The translations under genes were made by a program, and so were the position numbers. From Diplonema japonicum (taxonomy: Eukaryota > Protista > Euglenozoa: Diplonemea), in contig OZ025734.1 of assembly GCA_964019335.1 (NCBI GenBank), forward strand, positions 310,001-374,000: DNA of 64,000 nucleotides, in the 5' to 3' direction. Below are positions 1-44,801 of the stretch, one piece after another; position 1 is the stretch's first letter, and each line of letters opens with the position of its first letter. Below the pieces are notes generated by a model that made no database searches, was not told the origin of the DNA, and worked only from the letters and a program-made list of their open reading frames with translations.

Positions 1-65
1 TAATTAAACATGTATTTTGAACGATCATCATTTTTGCAAAAACCAAACACACAGCCAAGTAGATC

Positions 66-135
66 ACATCTCAGAGAGGACAAGTCACGGTGCACTCCGC
101 AAAGGGGGTCATCAGAGGCCGTGTGCAAAACTCTT
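66..135 (-). ncRNA. AGA1: single-hairpin AGA-box pseudouridylation guide, predicted target SSU rRNA GGACAAGUC-U-GGUGC (human Psi609 equivalent)
   Basis: Minus strand: AGAG ttttGCAC ACGG...CCGT GACTTGTC CTCT ctg AGA tgt. The pocket strands pair either side of UG in the conserved SSU helix 18 sequence, with 15 nt from pocket to AGA. Other copies start near 600, 1134, 9688, 17424, 17631, 33531, 33806, 34279, 44063, 44319 and 44581. Confidence 0.82.
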
Positions 136-315
136 TTATAATACATAACATATCGGTGAGAGGTGCTGCTCGGGACGCTCTGCACGGTACTTCACCGTCT
201 CTCCCCGTCAGCGGTAAGTTCACTCTGCCGCATGGGGAGGCAGCCAGAATCCAGAATGAGGGTGTGGCCATCGGAGGCCGTGTCCACAAAGTTCTTGCCT
301 TCCACAGGGGAGGGG

Positions 316-398
316 TCAGCAGGCAATAAGAACATTCGCATTGCAGGCTTGCTGCTCAGAAGTCTAACACGTGATTGAGGTTGCCGTGTGGTCATCAT
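316..398 (-). ncRNA. CD1: box C/D snoRNA, D' guide to LSU GAGUCUAACACGUG (yeast Cm663/snR58, human Cm1340/SNORD104 equivalent)
   Basis: C box ATGATGA (398-392), D' CTGA (359-356), D CTGA (319-316). The guide CACGTGTTAGACTT places D'+5 on the C of GAGUC. Identical copies at 850-932, 9404-9486, 17313-17395, 17881-17963, 33247-33329, 34051-34133. Confidence 0.9.
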
Positions 399-438
399 GC
401 AGAGGGGGTCACAGAAGATGGTCAAAGCTGGGGGAGAC

Positions 439-490
439 ACATGTCAGAAAGGACAAGTCACGGTGCACTCCGCAAAGTGTGCAAAAGTCC
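439..490 (-). ncRNA. AGA1b: internally deleted AGA1 variant with ACA box (possibly degenerate)
   Basis: Same 3' half as AGA1 but ends CTG-ACA-tgt and lacks the segment carrying CTGATGA. Copies near 973, 9527, 18004, 33370. Confidence 0.55.
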
Positions 491-506
491 TACCCTTCGA
501 AATGTC

Positions 507-582
507 ATATCTGACACAAGCGCGAAGACCTAACGCTGCACAGGTGTCTGTCGCAGCAACGAAAGGCGCTTAAGCTGTGTGG
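507..582 (-). ncRNA. AGA2: candidate single-hairpin AGA-box snoRNA, target unassigned
   Basis: Minus-strand stems ACACA/TGTGT, GCCT/AGGT and GCTGC/GCAGC, with 15 nt from the upper stem to AGAtat. Copies near 1041, 9595, 17538, 33438, 34186, 43970, 44488; deleted copy near 18072. Confidence 0.65.
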
Positions 583-1252
583 GCCGTCTCTTTTAGGATT
601 CATCTCAGAGAGGACAAGTCACGGTGCACTCCGCAAAGGGGGTCATCAGAGGCCGTGTGCAAAACTCTTTTATAATACATAACATATCGGTGAGAGGTGC
701 TGCTCGGGACGCTCTGCACGGTACTTCACCGTCTCTCCCCGTCAGCGGTAAGTTCACTCTGCCGCATGGGGAGGCAGCCAGAATCCAGAATGAGGGTGTG
801 GCCATCGGAGGCCGTGTCCACAAAGTTCTTGCCTTCCACAGGGGAGGGGTCAGCAGGCAATAAGAACATTCGCATTGCAGGCTTGCTGCTCAGAAGTCTA
901 ACACGTGATTGAGGTTGCCGTGTGGTCATCATGCAGAGGGGGTCACAGAAGATGGTCAAAGCTGGGGGAGACACATGTCAGAAAGGACAAGTCACGGTGC
1001 ACTCCGCAAAGTGTGCAAAAGTCCTACCCTTCGAAATGTCATATCTGACACAAGCGCGAAGACCTAACGCTGCACAGGTGTCTGTCGCAGCAACGAAAGG
1101 CGCTTAAGCTGTGTGGGCCGTCTCTTTTAGGATTCATCTCAGAGAGGACAAGTCACGGTGCACTCCGCAAAGGGGTCATCAGAGGCCGTGTGCAAAACTC
1201 TTATGGTTTTTAGATGCCGAATATCAAGGTTTTCCTTTGGTAGTTCTTTTGT

Positions 1253-1355
1253 TCAGAAGGAATCCAACTTTTTTCAAAAATATCGATCTCAGCTGGAAAA
1301 GGCGAACCCTTTCCATCGAGTGGTTAATTAAACATGTATTTTGAACGATCATCAT
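1253..1355 (-). ncRNA. CD2: structured box C/D snoRNA, D guide to LSU GGAAUCC(G/A)ACU
   Basis: C box ATGATGA (1355-1349) and D CTGA (1256-1253) preceded by AGTTGGATTCCTT. Internal stems include a TTCG-loop hairpin. Copies near 9815-9915, 33669-33771, 34417-34519, 44183-44284; partial copy at 1-30. Confidence 0.85.
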
Positions 1356-1758
1356 TTTTCTTTCCACCAAGGTTGTGTTGCACTCAAAACGCAAGAAAAA
1401 AAAAAAAAAAAAAAAAAAGAAAAAAAAATGACATTTAAAAAAAGAAGCCAAAATGAAGATTTAAAAAAGAAACAAGATAAAGTTCACAAAAATAGAAAAC
1501 TGAAAAACAAAAAGCTGAACGTTCCGAGTTTGCAGGTAAGGTAACACAAAGCGGAGTGATGTGTGCCAAAAGCCAACACCATCAAAAGTGCCACGAAGTG
1601 GGAACGAGAAGGGTTGGTGGACACACCACTGCAAAGCTTCAAGAAAAAAAAGGGGGGGGGGGAATGGAAAATGATTCAAAAACTCTTTTTGATTTTCTCT
1701 CAACTCAACTCAATAACTAAAAGTCCCCCCCACCACCACGACCACCACCACCACCTAT

Positions 1759-3351
1759 CTACTTCTTCTTAGCGATGACCTTCTCAGTGGTCTTGGTGAC
1801 CTTGCCAAGCATGACGACCCCGTTGCCCTCCATGATGGCGACACGGGAGAGACCCTCGCAGTTCTTGAAGGTGTCGACGACGAGGGGCTGCTGGGGGGCG
1901 AAGACGACCTCAGCCATCTCGTTGGCCTTCAGGCAGTGGGGCTCCTCCGCCTTCTTCCCGCCAGTCTCCTTCCCCATCTTCCACACCAGCTGGGTCATCC
2001 TCACGGCGGACCTCCCCGTCCTCACGAAGCACACGGGGGTGTACCCGACCTTCAGCTCACCGGGGTGGTCCAGGATCTGCACCTGCGCGTTGAAGGTCCC
2101 GGCCTCCTTCAGGGAGGCGTCCTTCTTGTAGATCATCACGTCACCGGTCCTCGGCATGTTGTCCTTGTTGAGACCCTTCACGTTCAGCCCCACGTTGTCA
2201 CCAGCCTTGGCGTCCTCGCACCTCTTGTGGTGCATCTCGCAGGTGAAGACCTTCCCCACGCAAGCGTTGGCGGCCGTGTGGGTGGGGAGGAAGAGCACTT
2301 CCTCACCTGGCTTCACGATACCTTGCTCCACACGGCCGGTAATAACATCACCGACACCCTTGATCTGTGTTTTTGTGTTGTGTTGGTGTTGGTGTTGTGT
2401 TGGTGTTGTGTTGTGTTGTGTTGTGTTGGTGTTGTGTGTTGGTGTTGTGTTGGTGTTGTGTTGTGTTGGTGTTGTGTTGTGTTGTGTTGTGTTGTGTTGT
2501 GTTGTGTTGAGTGTGTGTTTTCTTTCGTGTCTTCTCTCACATACCTTGTACACACCCGAAACAGGCATCCTCATAGGAGCATCGTTCTTCCTCTCAGGCA
2601 TCCTCACCATCTTGTCAAGGGCATCAACAAGGGTGTCGATGTGAAGCTTCTCGTCAGCCCCGACGAGGACATCCTGACCCTTCCACCAGTCCATCTTAGT
2701 CGACTTCTTCAGAAGGTTGTCACCGATCCAACCCGAGATGGGGAGGACGGGGACGTTCTTCTCAACGAAGTCCTTCTTCCAACCGGTCTTCACCAACATG
2801 CTCTTCATCTCCTCCTTGATCTCGTTGTACCTCTCCTCCTTGTACTGCGCGACGTCGCAGTCCATCTTGTTGATCCCGACGATGAGCTGCTTCACACCGA
2901 GCAGGTTGATGAGACGGGCGTGCTGCCTGGTCTGCCCCTGGATCTCACCAGCCTTGTGGTTCCCCCTCGCGATCGCCGACACGAAGTTCCCGTCAGCGGG
3001 GATCATCAGGAGCGCCACGTCCGCCTGCGAGGCCCCGGTGATCATGTTCTTGATGAAGTCCCTGTGCCCAGGGGCGTCGATCACCGTGTAGTGCCACTTC
3101 TCCGTGAAGAACTCCTTCGTCGTGCAGGCGATCGTCACACCACGCTCACGCTCCTCCTTCTGCCTGTCCATGTAGAAGGCGAAGGCGAAGGACTGCTTCC
3201 CGAGACGCTCCGCCTCAGCCTTCAACTTCTCCATCTCACGCTCGGGTATCCCACCCAGCTCGAAGAGGAGACGCCCCGTCGTCGTCGACTTCCCAGAGTC
3301 CACGTGACCGCAGATCACGATCGACAAGTGCTGCTTACCGTCCGTTGCCAT
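1759..3351 (-). CDS. EFL: Elongation factor-like GTPase (EFL), 2 exons; intron 2365-2544
   Basis: GHVDSGKS, DAPGH and NKMD GTPase motifs. EFL-type sequence (RLLFELGGIPERE, FYMDRQKEERERGVTIACTTKEFFT, GNHKAGEIQGQT). A GTATGT...CACAG intron removes the low-complexity insert. Confidence 0.95.
   Translation of the reverse strand: MATDGKQHLSIVICGHVDSGKSTTTGRLLFELGGIPEREMEKLKAEAERLGKQSFAFAFYMDRQKEERERGVTIACTTKEFFTEKWHYTVIDAPGHRDFIKNMITGASQADVALLMIPADGNFVSAIARGNHKAGEIQGQTRQHARLINLLGVKQLIVGINKMDCDVAQYKEERYNEIKEEMKSMLVKTGWKKDFVEKNVPVLPISGWIGDNLLKKSTKMDWWKGQDVLVGADEKLHIDTLVDALDKMVRMPERKNDAPMRMPVSGVYKVCERRHERKHTLNTTQHNTTQHNTTPTQHNTNTTPTHNTNTTQHNTTPTQHQHQHNTKTQIKGVGDVITGRVEQGIVKPGEEVLFLPTHTAANACVGKVFTCEMHHKRCEDAKAGDNVGLNVKGLNKDNMPRTGDVMIYKKDASLKEAGTFNAQVQILDHPGELKVGYTPVCFVRTGRSAVRMTQLVWKMGKETGGKKAEEPHCLKANEMAEVVFAPQQPLVVDTFKNCEGLSRVAIMEGNGVVMLGKVTKTTEKVIAKKK
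2367..2517. repeat. (GTGTT)n/(GGTGTT)-type microsatellite inside EFL intron
   Basis: Directly visible; a longer version lies at 35533-35716. Confidence 0.95.
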
Positions 3352-3769
3352 CTTTAGTTTTTCTCTTTTTAACTTGCTGCCCCTGTAGGTGCAGGTGTGT
3401 GGGTTTGTGGGGGGTGGGGAGAATAGTAGAAGGACAATATAAAAAAAAAAGGTCGTCTCGATTGTAGTGGTGCCATGCATGTAGTATGTGACAAGGAATG
3501 TAAAAGTGGAGAGGCAAAGAAAGCCTTTTGAAATAGGGAGAGGGGCCACAGAAGCAATTAAGCACCAACTGGAAAGTATGTTGTGGGAGGTATGCTTCAC
3601 TGGCACAAGTTCGCGGAGAGGCTACAACCTGGGTGGTTTCCTGATGAAGACGTGACTAGTAAGTAATTCTGTGTGCGGTGTGATTGTAGAAGGTGGCACT
3701 AGGAAGAATGAAAGAAACAGGTGTGAGAAAGAAGAGATAACAATAACAACACTAGCTCTTCACTGCCTT

Positions 3770-9403: not shown

Positions 9404-9915
9404 TCAGCAGGCAATAAGAACATTCGCATTGCAGGCTTGCTGCTCAGAAGTCTAACACGTGATTGAGGTTGCCGTGTGGTCATCATGCAGAGGGGGTCAC
9501 AGAAGATGGTCAAAGCTGGGGGAGACACATGTCAGAAAGGACAAGTCACGGTGCACTCCGCAAAGTGTGCAAAAGTCCTACCCTTCGAAATGTCATATCT
9601 GACACAAGCGCGAAGACCTAACGCTGCACAGGTGTCTGTCGCAGCAACGAAAGGCGCTTAAGCTGTGTGGGCCGTCTCTTTTAGGATTCATCTCAGAGAG
9701 GACAAGTCACGGTGCACTCCGCAAAGGGGTCATCAGAGGCCGTGTGCAAAACTCTTATGGTTTTCAGATGCTGCGTATCAAGAAACATGCCCTTTCTCAT
9801 GGTTGCTCTTTTGTTCAGAAGGAATCCAACTCTTTCAAAAATATCGATCTCAGCTGGAAAAGGAGAACCCTTTCCATGAGTGGTTAATTAAACATGTATT
9901 TTGAACGATCATCAT
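9404..9915 (-). ncRNA. snoRNA array 2 (CD1, AGA1b, AGA2, AGA1, CD2)
   Basis: Same modules as array 1. Confidence 0.85.
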
Positions 9916-17312: not shown

Positions 17313-18140
17313 TCAGCAGGCAATAAGAACATTCGCATTGCAGGCTTGCTGCTCAGAAGTCTAACACGTGATTGAGGTTGCCGTGTGGTCATCATGCAGA
17401 GGGGGTCACGTCCGGTGGGAAACACATCTCAGAGAGGACAAGTCACGGTGCACTCCGCAAAGGGGTCATCAGAGGCCGTGTGCAAAACTCTTTTAATACA
17501 AGATTTTCCTTTTTTCAAAAAAATGTAGAAGTCATTACAATCTGACACAAGCGCGAAGACCTAACGCTGCACAGGTGTCTGTCGCAGCAACGAAAGGCGC
17601 TTAAGCTGTGTGGGCCGTCTCTTTTAGGATTCATCTCAGAGAGGACAAGTCACGGTGCACTCCGCAAAGGGGGTCATCAGAGGCCGTGTGCAAAACTCTT
17701 TTATAATACATAACATATCGGTGAGAGGTGCTGCTCGGGACGCTCTGCACGGTACTTCACCGTCTCTCCCCGTCAGCGGTAAGTTCACTCTGCCGCATGG
17801 GGAGGCAGCCAGAATCCAGAATGAGGGTGTGGCCATCGGAGGCCGTGTCCACAAAGTTCTTGCCTTCCACAGGGGAGGGGTCAGCAGGCAATAAGAACAT
17901 TCGCATTGCAGGCTTGCTGCTCAGAAGTCTAACACGTGATTGAGGTTGCCGTGTGGTCATCATGCAGAGGGGGTCACAGAAGATGGTCAAAGCTGGGGGA
18001 GACACATGTCAGAAAGGACAAGTCACGGTGCACTCCGCAAAGTGTGCAAAAGTCCTACCCTTCGAAATGTCATATCTGACACAAGCGCGAAGACCTAACG
18101 CTGCACAGGCTTAAGCTGTGTGGGCCGTCTCTTTTAGGAT
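17313..18140 (-). ncRNA. snoRNA array 3 (CD1, AGA1, AGA2, AGA1, CD1, AGA1b, deleted AGA2)
   Basis: Same modules in a different combination and with different spacers. Confidence 0.85.
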
Positions 18141-33246: not shown

Positions 33247-34519
33247 TCAGCAGGCAATAAGAACATTCGCATTGCAGGCTTGCTGCTCAGAAGTCTAACA
33301 CGTGATTGAGGTTGCCGTGTGGTCATCATGCAGAGGGGGTCACAGAAGATGGTCAAAGCTGGGGGAGACACATGTCAGAAAGGACAAGTCACGGTGCACT
33401 CCGCAAAGTGTGCAAAAGTCCTACCCTTCGAAATGTCATATCTGACACAAGCGCGAAGACCTAACGCTGCACAGGTGTCTGTCGCAGCAACGAAAGGCGC
33501 TTAAGCTGTGTGGGCCGTCTCTTTTAGGATTCATCTCAGAGAGGACAAGTCACGGTGCACTCCGCAAAGGGGTCATCAGAGGCCGTGTGCAAAACTCTTA
33601 TGGTTTTCACCTTCCGCGTATCGGGAAACATTCCCTCTTCTCATGTTTTATTTTCTCTTGGCTTTTGTTCAGAAGGAATCCAACTTTTTTCAAAAATATC
33701 GATCTCAGCTGGAAAAGGCGAACCCTTTCCATCGAGTGGTTAATTAAACATGTATTTTGAACGATCATCATTTTTGCAAAAACCCAACACACAGCCAAGT
33801 AGATCACATCTCAGAGAGGACAAGTCACGGTGCACTCCGCAAAGGGGTCATCAGAGGCCGTGTGCAAAACTCTTTTATAATACATAACATATCGGTAGAG
33901 GTGCTGCTCGGGACGCTCTGCACGGTACTTCACCGTCTCTCCCCGTCAGCGGTAAGTTCACTCTGCCGCATGGGGAGGCAGCCAGAATCCAGAATGAGGG
34001 TGTGGCCATCGGCCGTGTCCACAAAGTTCTTGCCTTCCACAGGGGAGGGGTCAGCAGGCAATAAGAACATTCGCATTGCAGGCTTGCTGCTCAGAAGTCT
34101 AACACGTGATTGAGGTTGCCGTGTGGTCATCATGCAGAGGGGGTCACAGAAGATGGTCAAAGCTGGGGGACTTCATCGAAATGTCATATCTGACACAAGC
34201 GCGAAGACCTAACGCTGCACAGGTGTCTGTCGCAGCAACGAAAGGCGCTTAAGCTGTGTGGGCCGTCTCTTTTAGGATTCATCTCAGAGAGGACAAGTCA
34301 CGGTGCACTCCGCAAAGGGGTCATCAGAGGCCGTGTGCAAAACTCTTATGGTTTTCACCTTCCGCGTATCGGGAAACATTCCCTCTTCTCATGTTTTATT
34401 TTCTCTTGGCTTTTGTTCAGAAGGAATCCAACTTTTTTCAAAAATATCGATCTCAGCTGGAAAAGGCGAACCCTTTCCATCGAGTGGTTAATTAAACATG
34501 TATTTTGAACGATCATCAT
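33247..34519 (-). ncRNA. snoRNA array 4 (CD1, AGA1b, AGA2, AGA1, CD2, AGA1, CD1, AGA2, AGA1, CD2)
   Basis: Same modules, lying between ORF-X and EFL. Confidence 0.85.
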
Positions 34520-34924: not shown

Positions 34925-36550
34925 CTACTTCTTCTTAGCGATGACCTTCTCAGTGGTCTTGGTGACCTTGCCAAGCATGACGACCCCGTTGCCCTCCATG
35001 ATGGCGACACGGGAGAGACCCTCGCAGTTCTTGAAGGTGTCGACGACGAGGGGCTGCTGGGGGGCGAAGACGACCTCAGCCATCTCGTTGGCCTTCAGGC
35101 AGTGGGGCTCCTCCGCCTTCTTCCCGCCAGTCTCCTTCCCCATCTTCCACACCAGCTGGGTCATCCTCACGGCGGACCTCCCCGTCCTCACGAAGCACAC
35201 GGGGGTGTACCCGACCTTCAGCTCACCGGGGTGGTCCAGGATCTGCACCTGCGCGTTGAAGGTCCCGGCCTCCTTCAGGGAGGCGTCCTTCTTGTAGATC
35301 ATCACGTCACCGGTCCTCGGCATGTTGTCCTTGTTGAGACCCTTCACGTTCAGCCCCACGTTGTCACCAGCCTTGGCGTCCTCGCACCTCTTGTGGTGCA
35401 TCTCGCAGGTGAAGACCTTCCCCACGCAAGCGTTGGCGGCCGTGTGGGTGGGGAGGAAGAGCACTTCCTCACCTGGCTTCACGATACCTTGCTCCACACG
35501 GCCGGTAATAACATCACCGACACCCTTGATCTGTGTTTTTGTGTTGTGTTGGTGTTGGTGTTGTGTTGGTGTTGTGTTGGTGTTGTGTTGTGTTGTGTTG
35601 TGTTGTGTTGGTGTTGTGTTGTGTTGTGTTGTGTTGTGTTGTGTTGTGTTGGTGTTGTGTTGTGTTGTGTTGTGTTGGTGTTGTGTTGTGTTGTGTTGTG
35701 TTGTGTTGAGTGTGTGTTTTCTTTCGTGTCTTCTCTCACATACCTTGTACACACCCGAAACAGGCATCCTCATAGGAGCATCGTTCTTCCTCTCAGGCAT
35801 CCTCACCATCTTGTCAAGGGCATCAACAAGGGTGTCGATGTGAAGCTTCTCGTCAGCCCCGACGAGGACATCCTGACCCTTCCACCAGTCCATCTTAGTC
35901 GACTTCTTCAGAAGGTTGTCACCGATCCAACCCGAGATGGGGAGGACGGGGACGTTCTTCTCAACGAAGTCCTTCTTCCAACCGGTCTTCACCAACATGC
36001 TCTTCATCTCCTCCTTGATCTCGTTGTACCTCTCCTCCTTGTACTGCGCGACGTCGCAGTCCATCTTGTTGATCCCGACGATGAGCTGCTTCACACCGAG
36101 CAGGTTGATGAGACGGGCGTGCTGCCTGGTCTGCCCCTGGATCTCACCAGCCTTGTGGTTCCCCCTCGCGATCGCCGACACGAAGTTCCCGTCAGCGGGG
36201 ATCATCAGGAGCGCCACGTCCGCCTGCGAGGCCCCGGTGATCATGTTCTTGATGAAGTCCCTGTGCCCAGGGGCGTCGATCACCGTGTAGTGCCACTTCT
36301 CCGTGAAGAACTCCTTCGTCGTGCAGGCGATCGTCACACCACGCTCACGCTCCTCCTTCTGCCTGTCCATGTAGAAGGCGAAGGCGAAGGACTGCTTCCC
36401 GAGACGCTCCGCCTCAGCCTTCAACTTCTCCATCTCACGCTCGGGTATCCCACCCAGCTCGAAGAGGAGACGCCCCGTCGTCGTCGACTTCCCAGAGTCC
36501 ACGTGACCGCAGATCACGATCGACAAGTGCTGCTTACCGTCCGTTGCCAT
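34925..36550 (-). CDS. EFL: Elongation factor-like GTPase (EFL), copy 2; intron 35531-35743
   Basis: Same protein as copy 1; differs in intron microsatellite length. Confidence 0.95.
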   Translation of the reverse strand: MATDGKQHLSIVICGHVDSGKSTTTGRLLFELGGIPEREMEKLKAEAERLGKQSFAFAFYMDRQKEERERGVTIACTTKEFFTEKWHYTVIDAPGHRDFIKNMITGASQADVALLMIPADGNFVSAIARGNHKAGEIQGQTRQHARLINLLGVKQLIVGINKMDCDVAQYKEERYNEIKEEMKSMLVKTGWKKDFVEKNVPVLPISGWIGDNLLKKSTKMDWWKGQDVLVGADEKLHIDTLVDALDKMVRMPERKNDAPMRMPVSGVYKVCERRHERKHTLNTTQHNTTQHQHNTTQHNTNTTQHNTTQHNTTPTQHNTTQHNTNTTPTQHQHQHNTKTQIKGVGDVITGRVEQGIVKPGEEVLFLPTHTAANACVGKVFTCEMHHKRCEDAKAGDNVGLNVKGLNKDNMPRTGDVMIYKKDASLKEAGTFNAQVQILDHPGELKVGYTPVCFVRTGRSAVRMTQLVWKMGKETGGKKAEEPHCLKANEMAEVVFAPQQPLVVDTFKNCEGLSRVAIMEGNGVVMLGKVTKTTEKVIAKKK

Positions 36551-36968
36551 CTTTAGTTTTTCTCTTTTTAACTTGCTGCCCCTGTAGGTGCAGGTGTGTG
36601 GGTTTGTGGGGGGTGGGGAGAATAGTAGAAGGACAATATAAAAAAAAAAGGTCGTCTCGATTGTAGTGGTGCCATGCATGTAGTATGTGACAAGGAATGT
36701 AAAAGTGGAGAGGCAAAGAAAGCCTTTTGAAATAGGGAGAGGGGCCACAGAAGCAATTAAGCACCAACTGGAAAGTATGTTGTGGGAGGTATGCTTCACT
36801 GGCACAAGTTCGCGGAGAGGCTACAACCTGGGTGGTTTCCTGATGAAGACGTGACTAGTAAGTAATTCTGTGTGCGGTGTGATTGTAGAAGGTGGCACTA
36901 GGAAGAATGAAAGAAACAGGTGTGAGAAAGAAGAGATAACAATAACAACACTAGCTCTTCACTGCCTT

Positions 36969-43871: not shown

Positions 43872-44650
43872 TCAGCAGGCAATAAGAACATTCGCATTGC
43901 AGGCTTGCTGCTCAGAAGCCCAACCCTCAACAGCGTGTTACAGAGGTTCTCATCGCCCTTCGAAATGTCATATCTGACACAAGCGCGAAGACCTAACGCT
44001 GCACAGGTGTCTGTCGCAGCAACGAAAGGCGCTTAAGCTGTGTGGGCCGTCTCTTTTAGGTTTCATCTCAGAGAGGACAAGTCACGGTGCACTCCGCAAA
44101 GGGGGTCATCAGAGGCCGTGTGCAAAACTCTTATGGTTTTTAGATGCCGAATATCAAGGTTTTCCTTTGGTAGTTCTTTTGTTCAGAAGGAATCCAACTT
44201 TTTCAAAAATATCGATCTCAGCTGGAAAAGGAGAACCCTTTCCATCGAGTGGTTAATTAAACATGTATTTTGAACGATCATCATTTTTGCAAAAACCCAA
44301 CACACAGCCAAGTAGATCACATCTCAGAGAGGACAAGTCACGGTGCACTCCGCAAAGGGGTCATCAGAGGCCGTGTGCAAAACTCTTTATTGCGAAATCA
44401 GCAACAAGATAAGGTATAATCGGATAAGCCCTACCCTCACAGCGTGTTGCAGAGGTTCTAAGAGTCCTCATCGCCCTTCGAAATGTCATATCTGACACAA
44501 GCGCGAAGACCTAACGCTGCACAGGTGTCTGTCGCAGCAACGAAAGGCGCTTAAGCTGTGTGGGCCGTCTCTTTTAGGTTTCATCTCAGAGAGGACAAGT
44601 CACGGTGCACTCCGCAAAGGGGGTCATCAGAGGCCGTGTGCAAAACTCTT
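43872..44650 (-). ncRNA. snoRNA array 5 (chimeric CD1/CD3, AGA2, AGA1, CD2, AGA1, CD3, AGA2, AGA1)
   Basis: Same modules plus CD3. Confidence 0.82.
44398..44474 (-). ncRNA. CD3: candidate box C/D snoRNA
   Basis: GCGATGA (variant C box) ... CTGA (D), 77 nt, inside the array. The tract ACTCTTAGAACC resembles the complement of LSU GG(C/U)UCUAAG. Confidence 0.55.
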
Positions 44651-44801
44651 TTATCGTCCAACATAGGTTAGTAGTTAAAAAGAAATCCATTTTTGAGCGC
44701 AAGAAGGGGGGGGGGGGGGGGGGGGGGAACGAATTACTAAATGTTAGAGGTCTCAACTTAAGTGGAGATAGAAGAAGAAAAAAAAGGGGGAAAAAAAAAA
44801 A

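Follow-up and report, generated by a model that had tools for sequence, protein, structure and literature searches.

Can one antisense tract in one small RNA guide both the pseudouridylation and the 2'-O-methylation of rRNA? The question is raised by AGA1, a short module on the minus strand of the window (the whole stretch of 64,000 nt analysed here, G000:C87:310001-374000, from a genome of 62.5 Mb), in which an earlier note had seen an AGA-box hairpin overlapping the boxes of a box C/D RNA. If such a dual code were true, two ancient RNA-guided modification systems would be able to share one guide, a surprise in snoRNP biology, and AGA1 would be the first guide RNA serving both modification machineries with overlapping sequence.

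The analysis presented here leads to the view that AGA1 is very probably a multi-copy euglenozoan single-hairpin AGA-box (H/ACA-like) snoRNA, predicted to guide pseudouridylation of U609 in the organism's own SSU rRNA. This reading gives a target to a module that ranks among the most reiterated and abundant snoRNA units of the diplonemid, and would extend the AGA-box single-hairpin design, together with the conserved helix-18 pseudouridine, from kinetoplastids and Euglena to diplonemids, on whose snoRNAs a literature search found no paper.

The AGA1 module and its copies

Re-reading of the minus strand of 66-136 bore out the spelling of AGA1 given in the earlier note. From minus 136 to 66, the module is composed of AGAG, UUUUGCAC, a 36-nt arm, GACUUGUCC, UCUCUG, the AGA box and UGU. 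The 22-mer that runs from CCGT to AGA matches exactly 12 times in the window, the number counted before, where chance and shuffled sequences give an expectation of 0; five further copies in the window carry it as a TTTCTGACA variant (ending ...UUUCUGACA). Pattern searches of the whole genome identified 29 full copies of AGA1, distributed over three contigs (22 on C87, which contains the window, 4 on C32 and 3 on C111), and one additional copy with a 5' truncation. The full copies in the window are the following.

66..136, minus strand: focal AGA1 copy, ~70-71 nt, predicted single-hairpin AGA-box (H/ACA-like) guide
600..670, minus strand: AGA1 copy 2
1134-1203, 9688-9757, 17424-17493, 17631-17701 and 33531-33600, minus strand: full AGA1 copies, approximate limits
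33806-33875, 34279-34348, 44063-44133, 44319-44388 and 44581-44651, minus strand: full AGA1 copies, approximate limits

The block that is conserved across the 29 copies extends from (A)AGAG to 2-3 nt beyond AGA, that is, over 70-71 nt, and contigs from public runs that derive from other AGA1 copies part from the focal sequence at 64/65 and 135/139, the edges of this block. Stem I, both guide arms and the AGA box are invariant in 29/29 copies; what varies, namely C4/C5, U2/U3 and U/C at 114, is confined to stem II and its loop. The AGA1 arrays are mosaics of small modules and lie on the strand common to all neighbouring protein genes, an arrangement known in Euglenozoa as the polycistronic layout.

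Hairpin architecture

In the constrained fold, AGA1 forms a 4-bp stem I, an open pocket, a stem II of ~10 bp and a 13-nt loop, and its elements are arranged as follows.

131..134, minus strand: stem I, 5' strand AGAG, paired with CUCU (73-76) in the free and constrained folds
123..126, minus strand: 5' guide arm GCAC, within the 5' pocket strand (123-130), predicted to pair with SSU G611-C614
87..122, minus strand: stem II (~10 bp, two bulges) and 13-nt apical loop, constrained fold
109..115, minus strand: C-like box CUGAUGA, with CUG paired in stem II and U114 replaced by C in 8/29 copies
78..86, minus strand: 3' guide arm GACUUGUCC, predicted to pair with SSU G600-C608, leaving U609 and G610 unpaired
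73..76, minus strand: stem I, 3' strand CUCU, free and constrained folds
71..74, minus strand: CUGA, putative D box, invariant in all copies, as are its H/ACA-like roles
69..71, minus strand: AGA box, at a distance of 15 nt from the pocket top, with 2-3 nt of the conserved block after it

A set of rules is available from 100 trypanosomatid H/ACA-like RNAs (PMC2613932). These RNAs are single hairpins of 57-91 nt with the AGA box 3 nt from the 3' end, the pseudouridine lies 13-16 nt from AGA, and the guide forms 3-9 bp on each side, leaving the target uridine and the next nucleotide unpaired; a perfect stem of 3-7 bp stands directly above the pocket, stem I consists of 5-8 perfect bp, with an A or C one nucleotide upstream, and 1-3 unpaired nucleotides precede AGA (PMC2613932). 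AGA1 agrees with them in size (70-71 nt), in the pocket duplex (9 + 4 bp), in the distance of 15 nt and in stem II, whose base directly above the pocket consists of A15-U50, C16-G49 and G17-C48 (and also C14-G51 when the target is not bound). One unpaired G separates stem I from the AGA box, and an A or C precedes stem I in all copies. The sole departure is stem I itself, which has 4 bp (AGAG/CUCU) compared with the 5-8 bp of trypanosomatids. In its free fold, AGA1 does not exceed shuffled sequences in stability (z ~0).

A search against Rfam, covering the whole window at gathering thresholds and 40-160 at E<=10, gave nothing but noise (SNORD105, 12 bits; HgcE, 11.7 bits), and AGA1 matched no trypanosomatid family in it. 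A metagenome scan with an 18-mer spanning the 3' strand of stem II and the guide gave seven matches, all of them in unrelated sequence.

The target in the SSU rRNA

The rDNA unit of this organism is found on G000:C119 and contains an SSU of 2070 nt, the 5.8S and an LSU of ~3480 nt. Positions 597-614 of the SSU read GGUGGACAAGUC-U-G-GUGC and, because the SSU contains GGACAAGUC-U609-G-GUGC, the pocket of AGA1 (GCAC / GACUUGUC(C)) brackets U609, confirming that it surrounds a conserved uridine. Pairing of GACUUGUCC with G600-C608 (9 bp) and of GCAC with G611-C614 (4 bp) gives 13 Watson-Crick pairs and leaves U609 and G610 free, and the distance of 15 nt between the top of the pocket and AGA that had been reported before was found again. 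From the conserved helix-18 sequence, U609 and G601 of this SSU are presumably the equivalents of U609 and G601 of human 18S rRNA. In humans, SNORA24 is listed for 18S Psi609 and Psi863, and SNORD103 for 18S Gm601.

The same stretch of rRNA has been mapped in Trypanosoma brucei, where SSU 653-672, read residue by residue, is GGACAAGUCUGGUGCCAGCA (PMC10662448, supplementary tables). This is identical to positions 600-619 of the SSU studied here. T. brucei U662 is a pseudouridine with an occupancy of ~0.94, detected by four methods and lowered by CBF5 knock-down, and it has been assigned to an AGA-box RNA, TB6Cs1H3 (PMC10662448).

By analogy with other H/ACA guides, AGA1 RNA would be cut from a polycistronic transcript, would fold into stem I, pocket, stem II and loop, and would bind Cbf5, Nop10, Gar1 and Nhp2. 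The pocket would then pair with G600-C608 and G611-C614 of the SSU rRNA, so that U609, a helix-18 residue next to the 530 loop, would be exposed and isomerised to pseudouridine. AGA1 would thereby do the job that TB6Cs1H3 does in T. brucei and SNORA24 in humans. Within this scheme we infer Cbf5 binding, the actual pseudouridine at U609 and the exact ends of the AGA1 RNA. The motifs CUGAUGA and CUGA would not constitute a working box C/D pair: CUGA may simply be the CUG that precedes the AGA box, partly within stem I, and CUGAUGA may be a part of stem II and the loop that is one transition away from the CCGAUGA of other copies.

Expression and constraint

Public runs were examined as assembled contigs with word depth. 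In run X2, which comprises 707 million letters, the summed word depth reaches ~92,000-249,000 over 59-134, with ~4,700 at 40-58 and ~7,000 at 135-153 in the flanks. A DNA run of this size would represent ~11-fold coverage of the 62.5-Mb genome, and ~30 copies would reach a few hundred at most; the depth over AGA1 is far above any possible DNA coverage, and run X2 must therefore hold RNA, in which, as we infer, AGA1 is very abundant.

The relatives available for comparison (B, C and D) are very close, and AGA1 is identical in them, apart, in C and D, from the length of the C-run. The neighbouring region 315-600 shows, in organisms C and D, 8-9 substitutions and ~28 gap letters, mostly inside AGA1b, a shortened variant of AGA1 described below. 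An unchanged AGA1 in an altered neighbourhood therefore suggests that AGA1 is constrained as a whole and that AGA1b is decaying. The pseudouridine-guide half of the earlier proposal is in this way well supported by the geometry of the hairpin, the pairing with the target, the conservation among copies, the depth at the RNA level and the T. brucei pseudouridine.

Origin of the box-like motifs

With the base composition of the array, the chance of finding UGAUGA in the 36-nt upper arm is ~0.6%, and that of a CUGA placing D+5 in the antisense arm is ~3.3%. Jointly, the two motifs have a probability of ~2e-4 per guide RNA, or ~2% for ~100 families per genome, and if one mismatch is allowed in the C box the expectation rises to ~0.4 per genome. 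For a scan of such size, a coincidence of this kind is uncommon, not remarkable. The box-like motifs of AGA1 look coincidental, and the case illustrates that chance can produce such motifs in mosaic snoRNA arrays.

A different origin, which is conceivable although we consider it rather unlikely, is that the C-like box is left over from the shuffling of snoRNA modules, the 5' half of AGA1 having been copied from or shared with another module and the motif being functionless today. The candidate partner is module X, present in three copies.

222-300, also ~756-834 and ~17787-17865, minus strand: module X

The first ~35 nt of module X recur in the 5' half of AGA1, and within them an 18-mer differs at just one or two positions (the 3' halves are unrelated). 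The arrays are, in addition, mosaics of modules. The likeness between the two modules looks like recombination or shuffling between snoRNA modules. At the place where AGA1 has C[U/C]GAUGA, module X has CCGAUGG, and the motif therefore appears to be part of a segment that has been shuffled, and a single transition separates it from a C box. Against this, module X gave no convincing target in rRNA when it was read either as a C/D guide or as an H/ACA-like one, and it cannot therefore be called a C/D gene. A relic would in any case be a statement on the origin of the motif, compatible with the role of AGA1 as a predicted pseudouridine guide and not opposed to it.

A possible role other than guiding modification

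It could also be asked whether AGA1 guides any modification. It might be a Cbf5-independent "AGA-like" RNA, or a chaperone for the folding or processing of helix 18 that acts by pairing with the rRNA and leaves it unmodified. Trypanosomatid AGA-like RNAs share the shape of the H/ACA-like guides and yet are not destabilised by CBF5 knock-down (PMC2613932), the copy number and the abundance of AGA1 are very high, and pockets that match rRNA are easily found by chance, a generic H/ACA pocket census of the window being too noisy for statistics (~20-55 matches in the reversed controls). However, the pairing of AGA1 meets, with canonical spacing, exactly the uridine that is pseudouridylated in T. 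brucei and humans, and both guide arms are invariant in 29/29 copies, so that this explanation appears improbable and AGA1 is better described as a predicted guide for U609.

The box C/D reading

The earlier note proposed, in addition, an alternative fold of AGA1 that could recruit fibrillarin. In such a fold, AGA1 would form a C/D kink-turn (UGAUGA/CUGA) bound by Snu13, Nop56/58 and fibrillarin, with the same antisense arm guiding 2'-O-methylation of G601. Several of the observations behind this proposal were recovered. The AGA box overlaps CUGA in all copies, a C-like CUGAUGA does lie in the upper arm (109..115), and D+5 does fall on a conserved G, which in this SSU is G601. The CUGA motif is exact in 29/29 copies and UGAUGA in 21/29, the joint probability calculated above is low, the human equivalent of the G that pairs at D+5 is methylated (SNORD103), and no other guide for G601 was found in the genome.

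The rRNA sequence itself differs from the one assumed. The antisense tract had been described as 12 contiguous nt complementary to GGAGGACAAGUC, but SSU 597-608 of this organism is GGUGGACAAGUC, position 599 being U rather than A. Because the rRNA reads GGUGGACAAGUC and not GGAGGACAAGUC, the methyl-guide duplex is not of 12 bp: it has 9 contiguous bp (G600-C608) and then, at D+3, a U:U mismatch that lies two positions from the nucleotide to be methylated, beyond which come C-G and U.G. A C/D guide would be expected to pair over 10 bp or more up to the D box, with its target opposite the 5th nucleotide; D+5 is G601 in AGA1, but its 9 bp occupy positions 4-12 from CUGA. Genuine guides of these arrays pair over 11-14 bp. 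The yardstick used here is a canonical box C/D snoRNA that lies in the same 534-bp unit as AGA1.

314..400, minus strand, 7-8 copies: canonical box C/D snoRNA (C 392-398, D' 356-359, D 316-319)

In this RNA, read from 400 to 314, the C, D' and D boxes are accompanied by a weak C', and there are two guides, one of 14 bp at D' (predicted Cm at LSU C733) and one of 11 bp at D (predicted Cm at LSU C2778). A D+5 scan of the window with a threshold of 10 bp, below which the 9-bp tract of AGA1 falls, gave as multi-copy guides those for LSU C733 (14 bp), LSU C2778 (11 bp) and LSU A2198 (13 bp). A second box C/D snoRNA (AUGAUGA...CUGA...CUGA), present at ~1256, 9818, 33672, 34420 and 44186 on the minus strand, carries the 13-bp guide for a predicted Am at LSU A2198, with LSU A730 as a weaker alternative.

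Box C/D RNAs also differ from AGA1 in layout. The snoRNA at 400-314 has 72 nt from C to D, whereas the C-like and putative D boxes of AGA1 stand just 33-34 nt apart; a C'/D' pair is missing, nothing like UGAUGA or CUGA occurring in those 33-34 nt, and the spacing falls short of that for a two-fold RNP. In all copies CUGA, the putative D box (74-71), is near the 3' end as in a C/D RNA, with 5 nt between it and the block's end. A C box (RUGAUGA) should be near the 5' end, but the C-like box begins 22 nt inside the block, with its CUG in stem II. The invariant 5' part thus left outside, composed of stem I and the 5' pocket strand, is required by the hairpin and useless to a C/D RNA. For the stem flanking the kink-turn, of whose weakness the earlier note had itself warned, a 3-nt kink-turn bulge leaves one Watson-Crick pair (C20-G67) and one wobble in the flanks. 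The lack of a terminal stem, which genuine C/D RNAs here share, was given no weight, because the snoRNA at 400-314 is also without one.

Polymorphism among the copies bears on the C-like box. In 8/29 copies it is CCGAUGA, a stem-strengthening change in which U-to-C at 114 converts U23.G39 into C-G and takes the pocket-open hairpin from -10.6 to -12.5 kcal/mol. In the modelled fold, this is the behaviour of a stem position and not that of an essential box C residue. The C variant was not seen in the contigs of run X2, and the CCGAUGA copies may therefore be weakly expressed, which weakens the argument.

The match of D+5 to G601 is not an independent feature of the RNA, since any CUG placed directly in front of an AGA box with 15-nt spacing puts D+5 on Psi-8. 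In T. brucei, moreover, the G itself has been surveyed: G654 is entered as unmodified, and the combined table has no Nm between SSU 131 and 680 (PMC10662448). G654 is the counterpart of G601, and it is unmodified while Psi662 is present.

A genome-wide search for a separate C/D guide to G601 found, apart from AGA1, no antisense to G597-C608 adjoining a D box. In the whole genome, ACTTGTCCNNNCTGA occurs only in AGA1 and in 4 singletons; the 15 exact matches to TTGTCCACNCTGA are singletons, with neither a canonical C box nor further antisense extension; and the repeated ACTTGTCCAC matches that were inspected have no D box after them and look like repeated coding sequence. If G601 were methylated, AGA1 would therefore be the only visible candidate guide. 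By analogy with T. brucei, it is more economical to suppose that G601 bears no modification.

Taken with the rRNA sequence, the polymorphism, the spacing, the guide length and the T. brucei G, a second box C/D fold that recruits fibrillarin to methylate G601 is not supported, and the dual code is very improbable. The particular form in which a 70-nt RNA would switch between the H/ACA-like hairpin and a minimal "half-mer" C/D fold, with one arm for Psi609 and Gm601, is likewise most unlikely.

The ACA variant

A shortened form of the module, AGA1b, had been cited as changing AGA to ACA while keeping CUGA, and this was verified.

438..492, ~972-1026, 9526-9580, 18003-18057 and 33369-33423, minus strand: AGA1b, shortened ACA variant

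AGA1b is without 16-17 nt of AGA1, the whole C-like box included, and the pocket of its best hairpin lies 19 nt from ACA. A whole-genome pattern search found only these 5 copies, all in the window; depth over them is low, and they are heavily indel-laden in the related organisms in which AGA1 is unchanged. A functional second isoform was considered and rejected on the distance of the pocket from ACA, the missing C-like box and the decay in relatives, and AGA1b is probably a pseudogene carried along in the repeat unit.

Other features of the arrays and of the rDNA

A further AGA-box-type module of ~87 nt (506-592, minus strand), ending in GUGUC-AGA-UAU, is present in each array unit and has a high depth in run X2; a pocket scan of it gave no rRNA target. 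Two paralogous EF-1alpha-like (EFL-type) GTPase genes (1759-3606 and 34925-36805, both on the minus strand) are each located directly upstream of a snoRNA array and contain, on the plus strand, a (GTTGT)n microsatellite. The best named relatives of the first (1759-3606) are in Diplonema papillatum, with 79% identity, as would be expected in a diplonemid.

The rDNA unit on G000:C119 measures just 6825 bp, compact in comparison with the rDNA of Euglena or trypanosomatids, and its LSU match is unfragmented (RF02543, positions 1-3401). Fragments of SSU rDNA, of 270-590 bp, are scattered on contigs away from the rDNA array.

G000:C37:500460-501050, C78:225662-226071 and C80:201742-202018: SSU rDNA fragments
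G000:C18:611890-612361 and C34:455893-456158: SSU rDNA fragments

Comparison with known systems

Archaeal H/ACA sRNAs that contain a K-turn or K-loop (the L7Ae site) resemble AGA1 in being single hairpins whose upper stem contains a GA-rich motif. For AGA1, a K-turn or K-loop was considered and rejected: none can form in the hairpin fold, because the strand opposite UGAUGA offers G37-C38 at the place of the necessary G-A.

Composite C/D-H/ACA scaRNAs such as U85 carry both kinds of box on one transcript, as AGA1 would. In U85, however, the C/D and H/ACA domains are separate and complete, each with its own guide, whereas in AGA1 a single antisense arm would serve boxes that overlap the hairpin, and several of the tests above go against the C/D features.

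In humans, the two modifications are attended to by two separate molecules, SNORA24, a two-hairpin RNA with H and ACA boxes, and SNORD103, a canonical C/D RNA, unlike AGA1, which is one 70-nt hairpin with an AGA box.

The closest parallel is TB6Cs1H3 of T. brucei, which is directed to the uridine predicted as the target of AGA1, in an identical 20-nt rRNA context (GGACAAGUC-U-GGUGCCAGCAC). Both are single hairpins with an AGA box encoded in mixed, reiterated snoRNA clusters, and the likeness between them is one of target and class.
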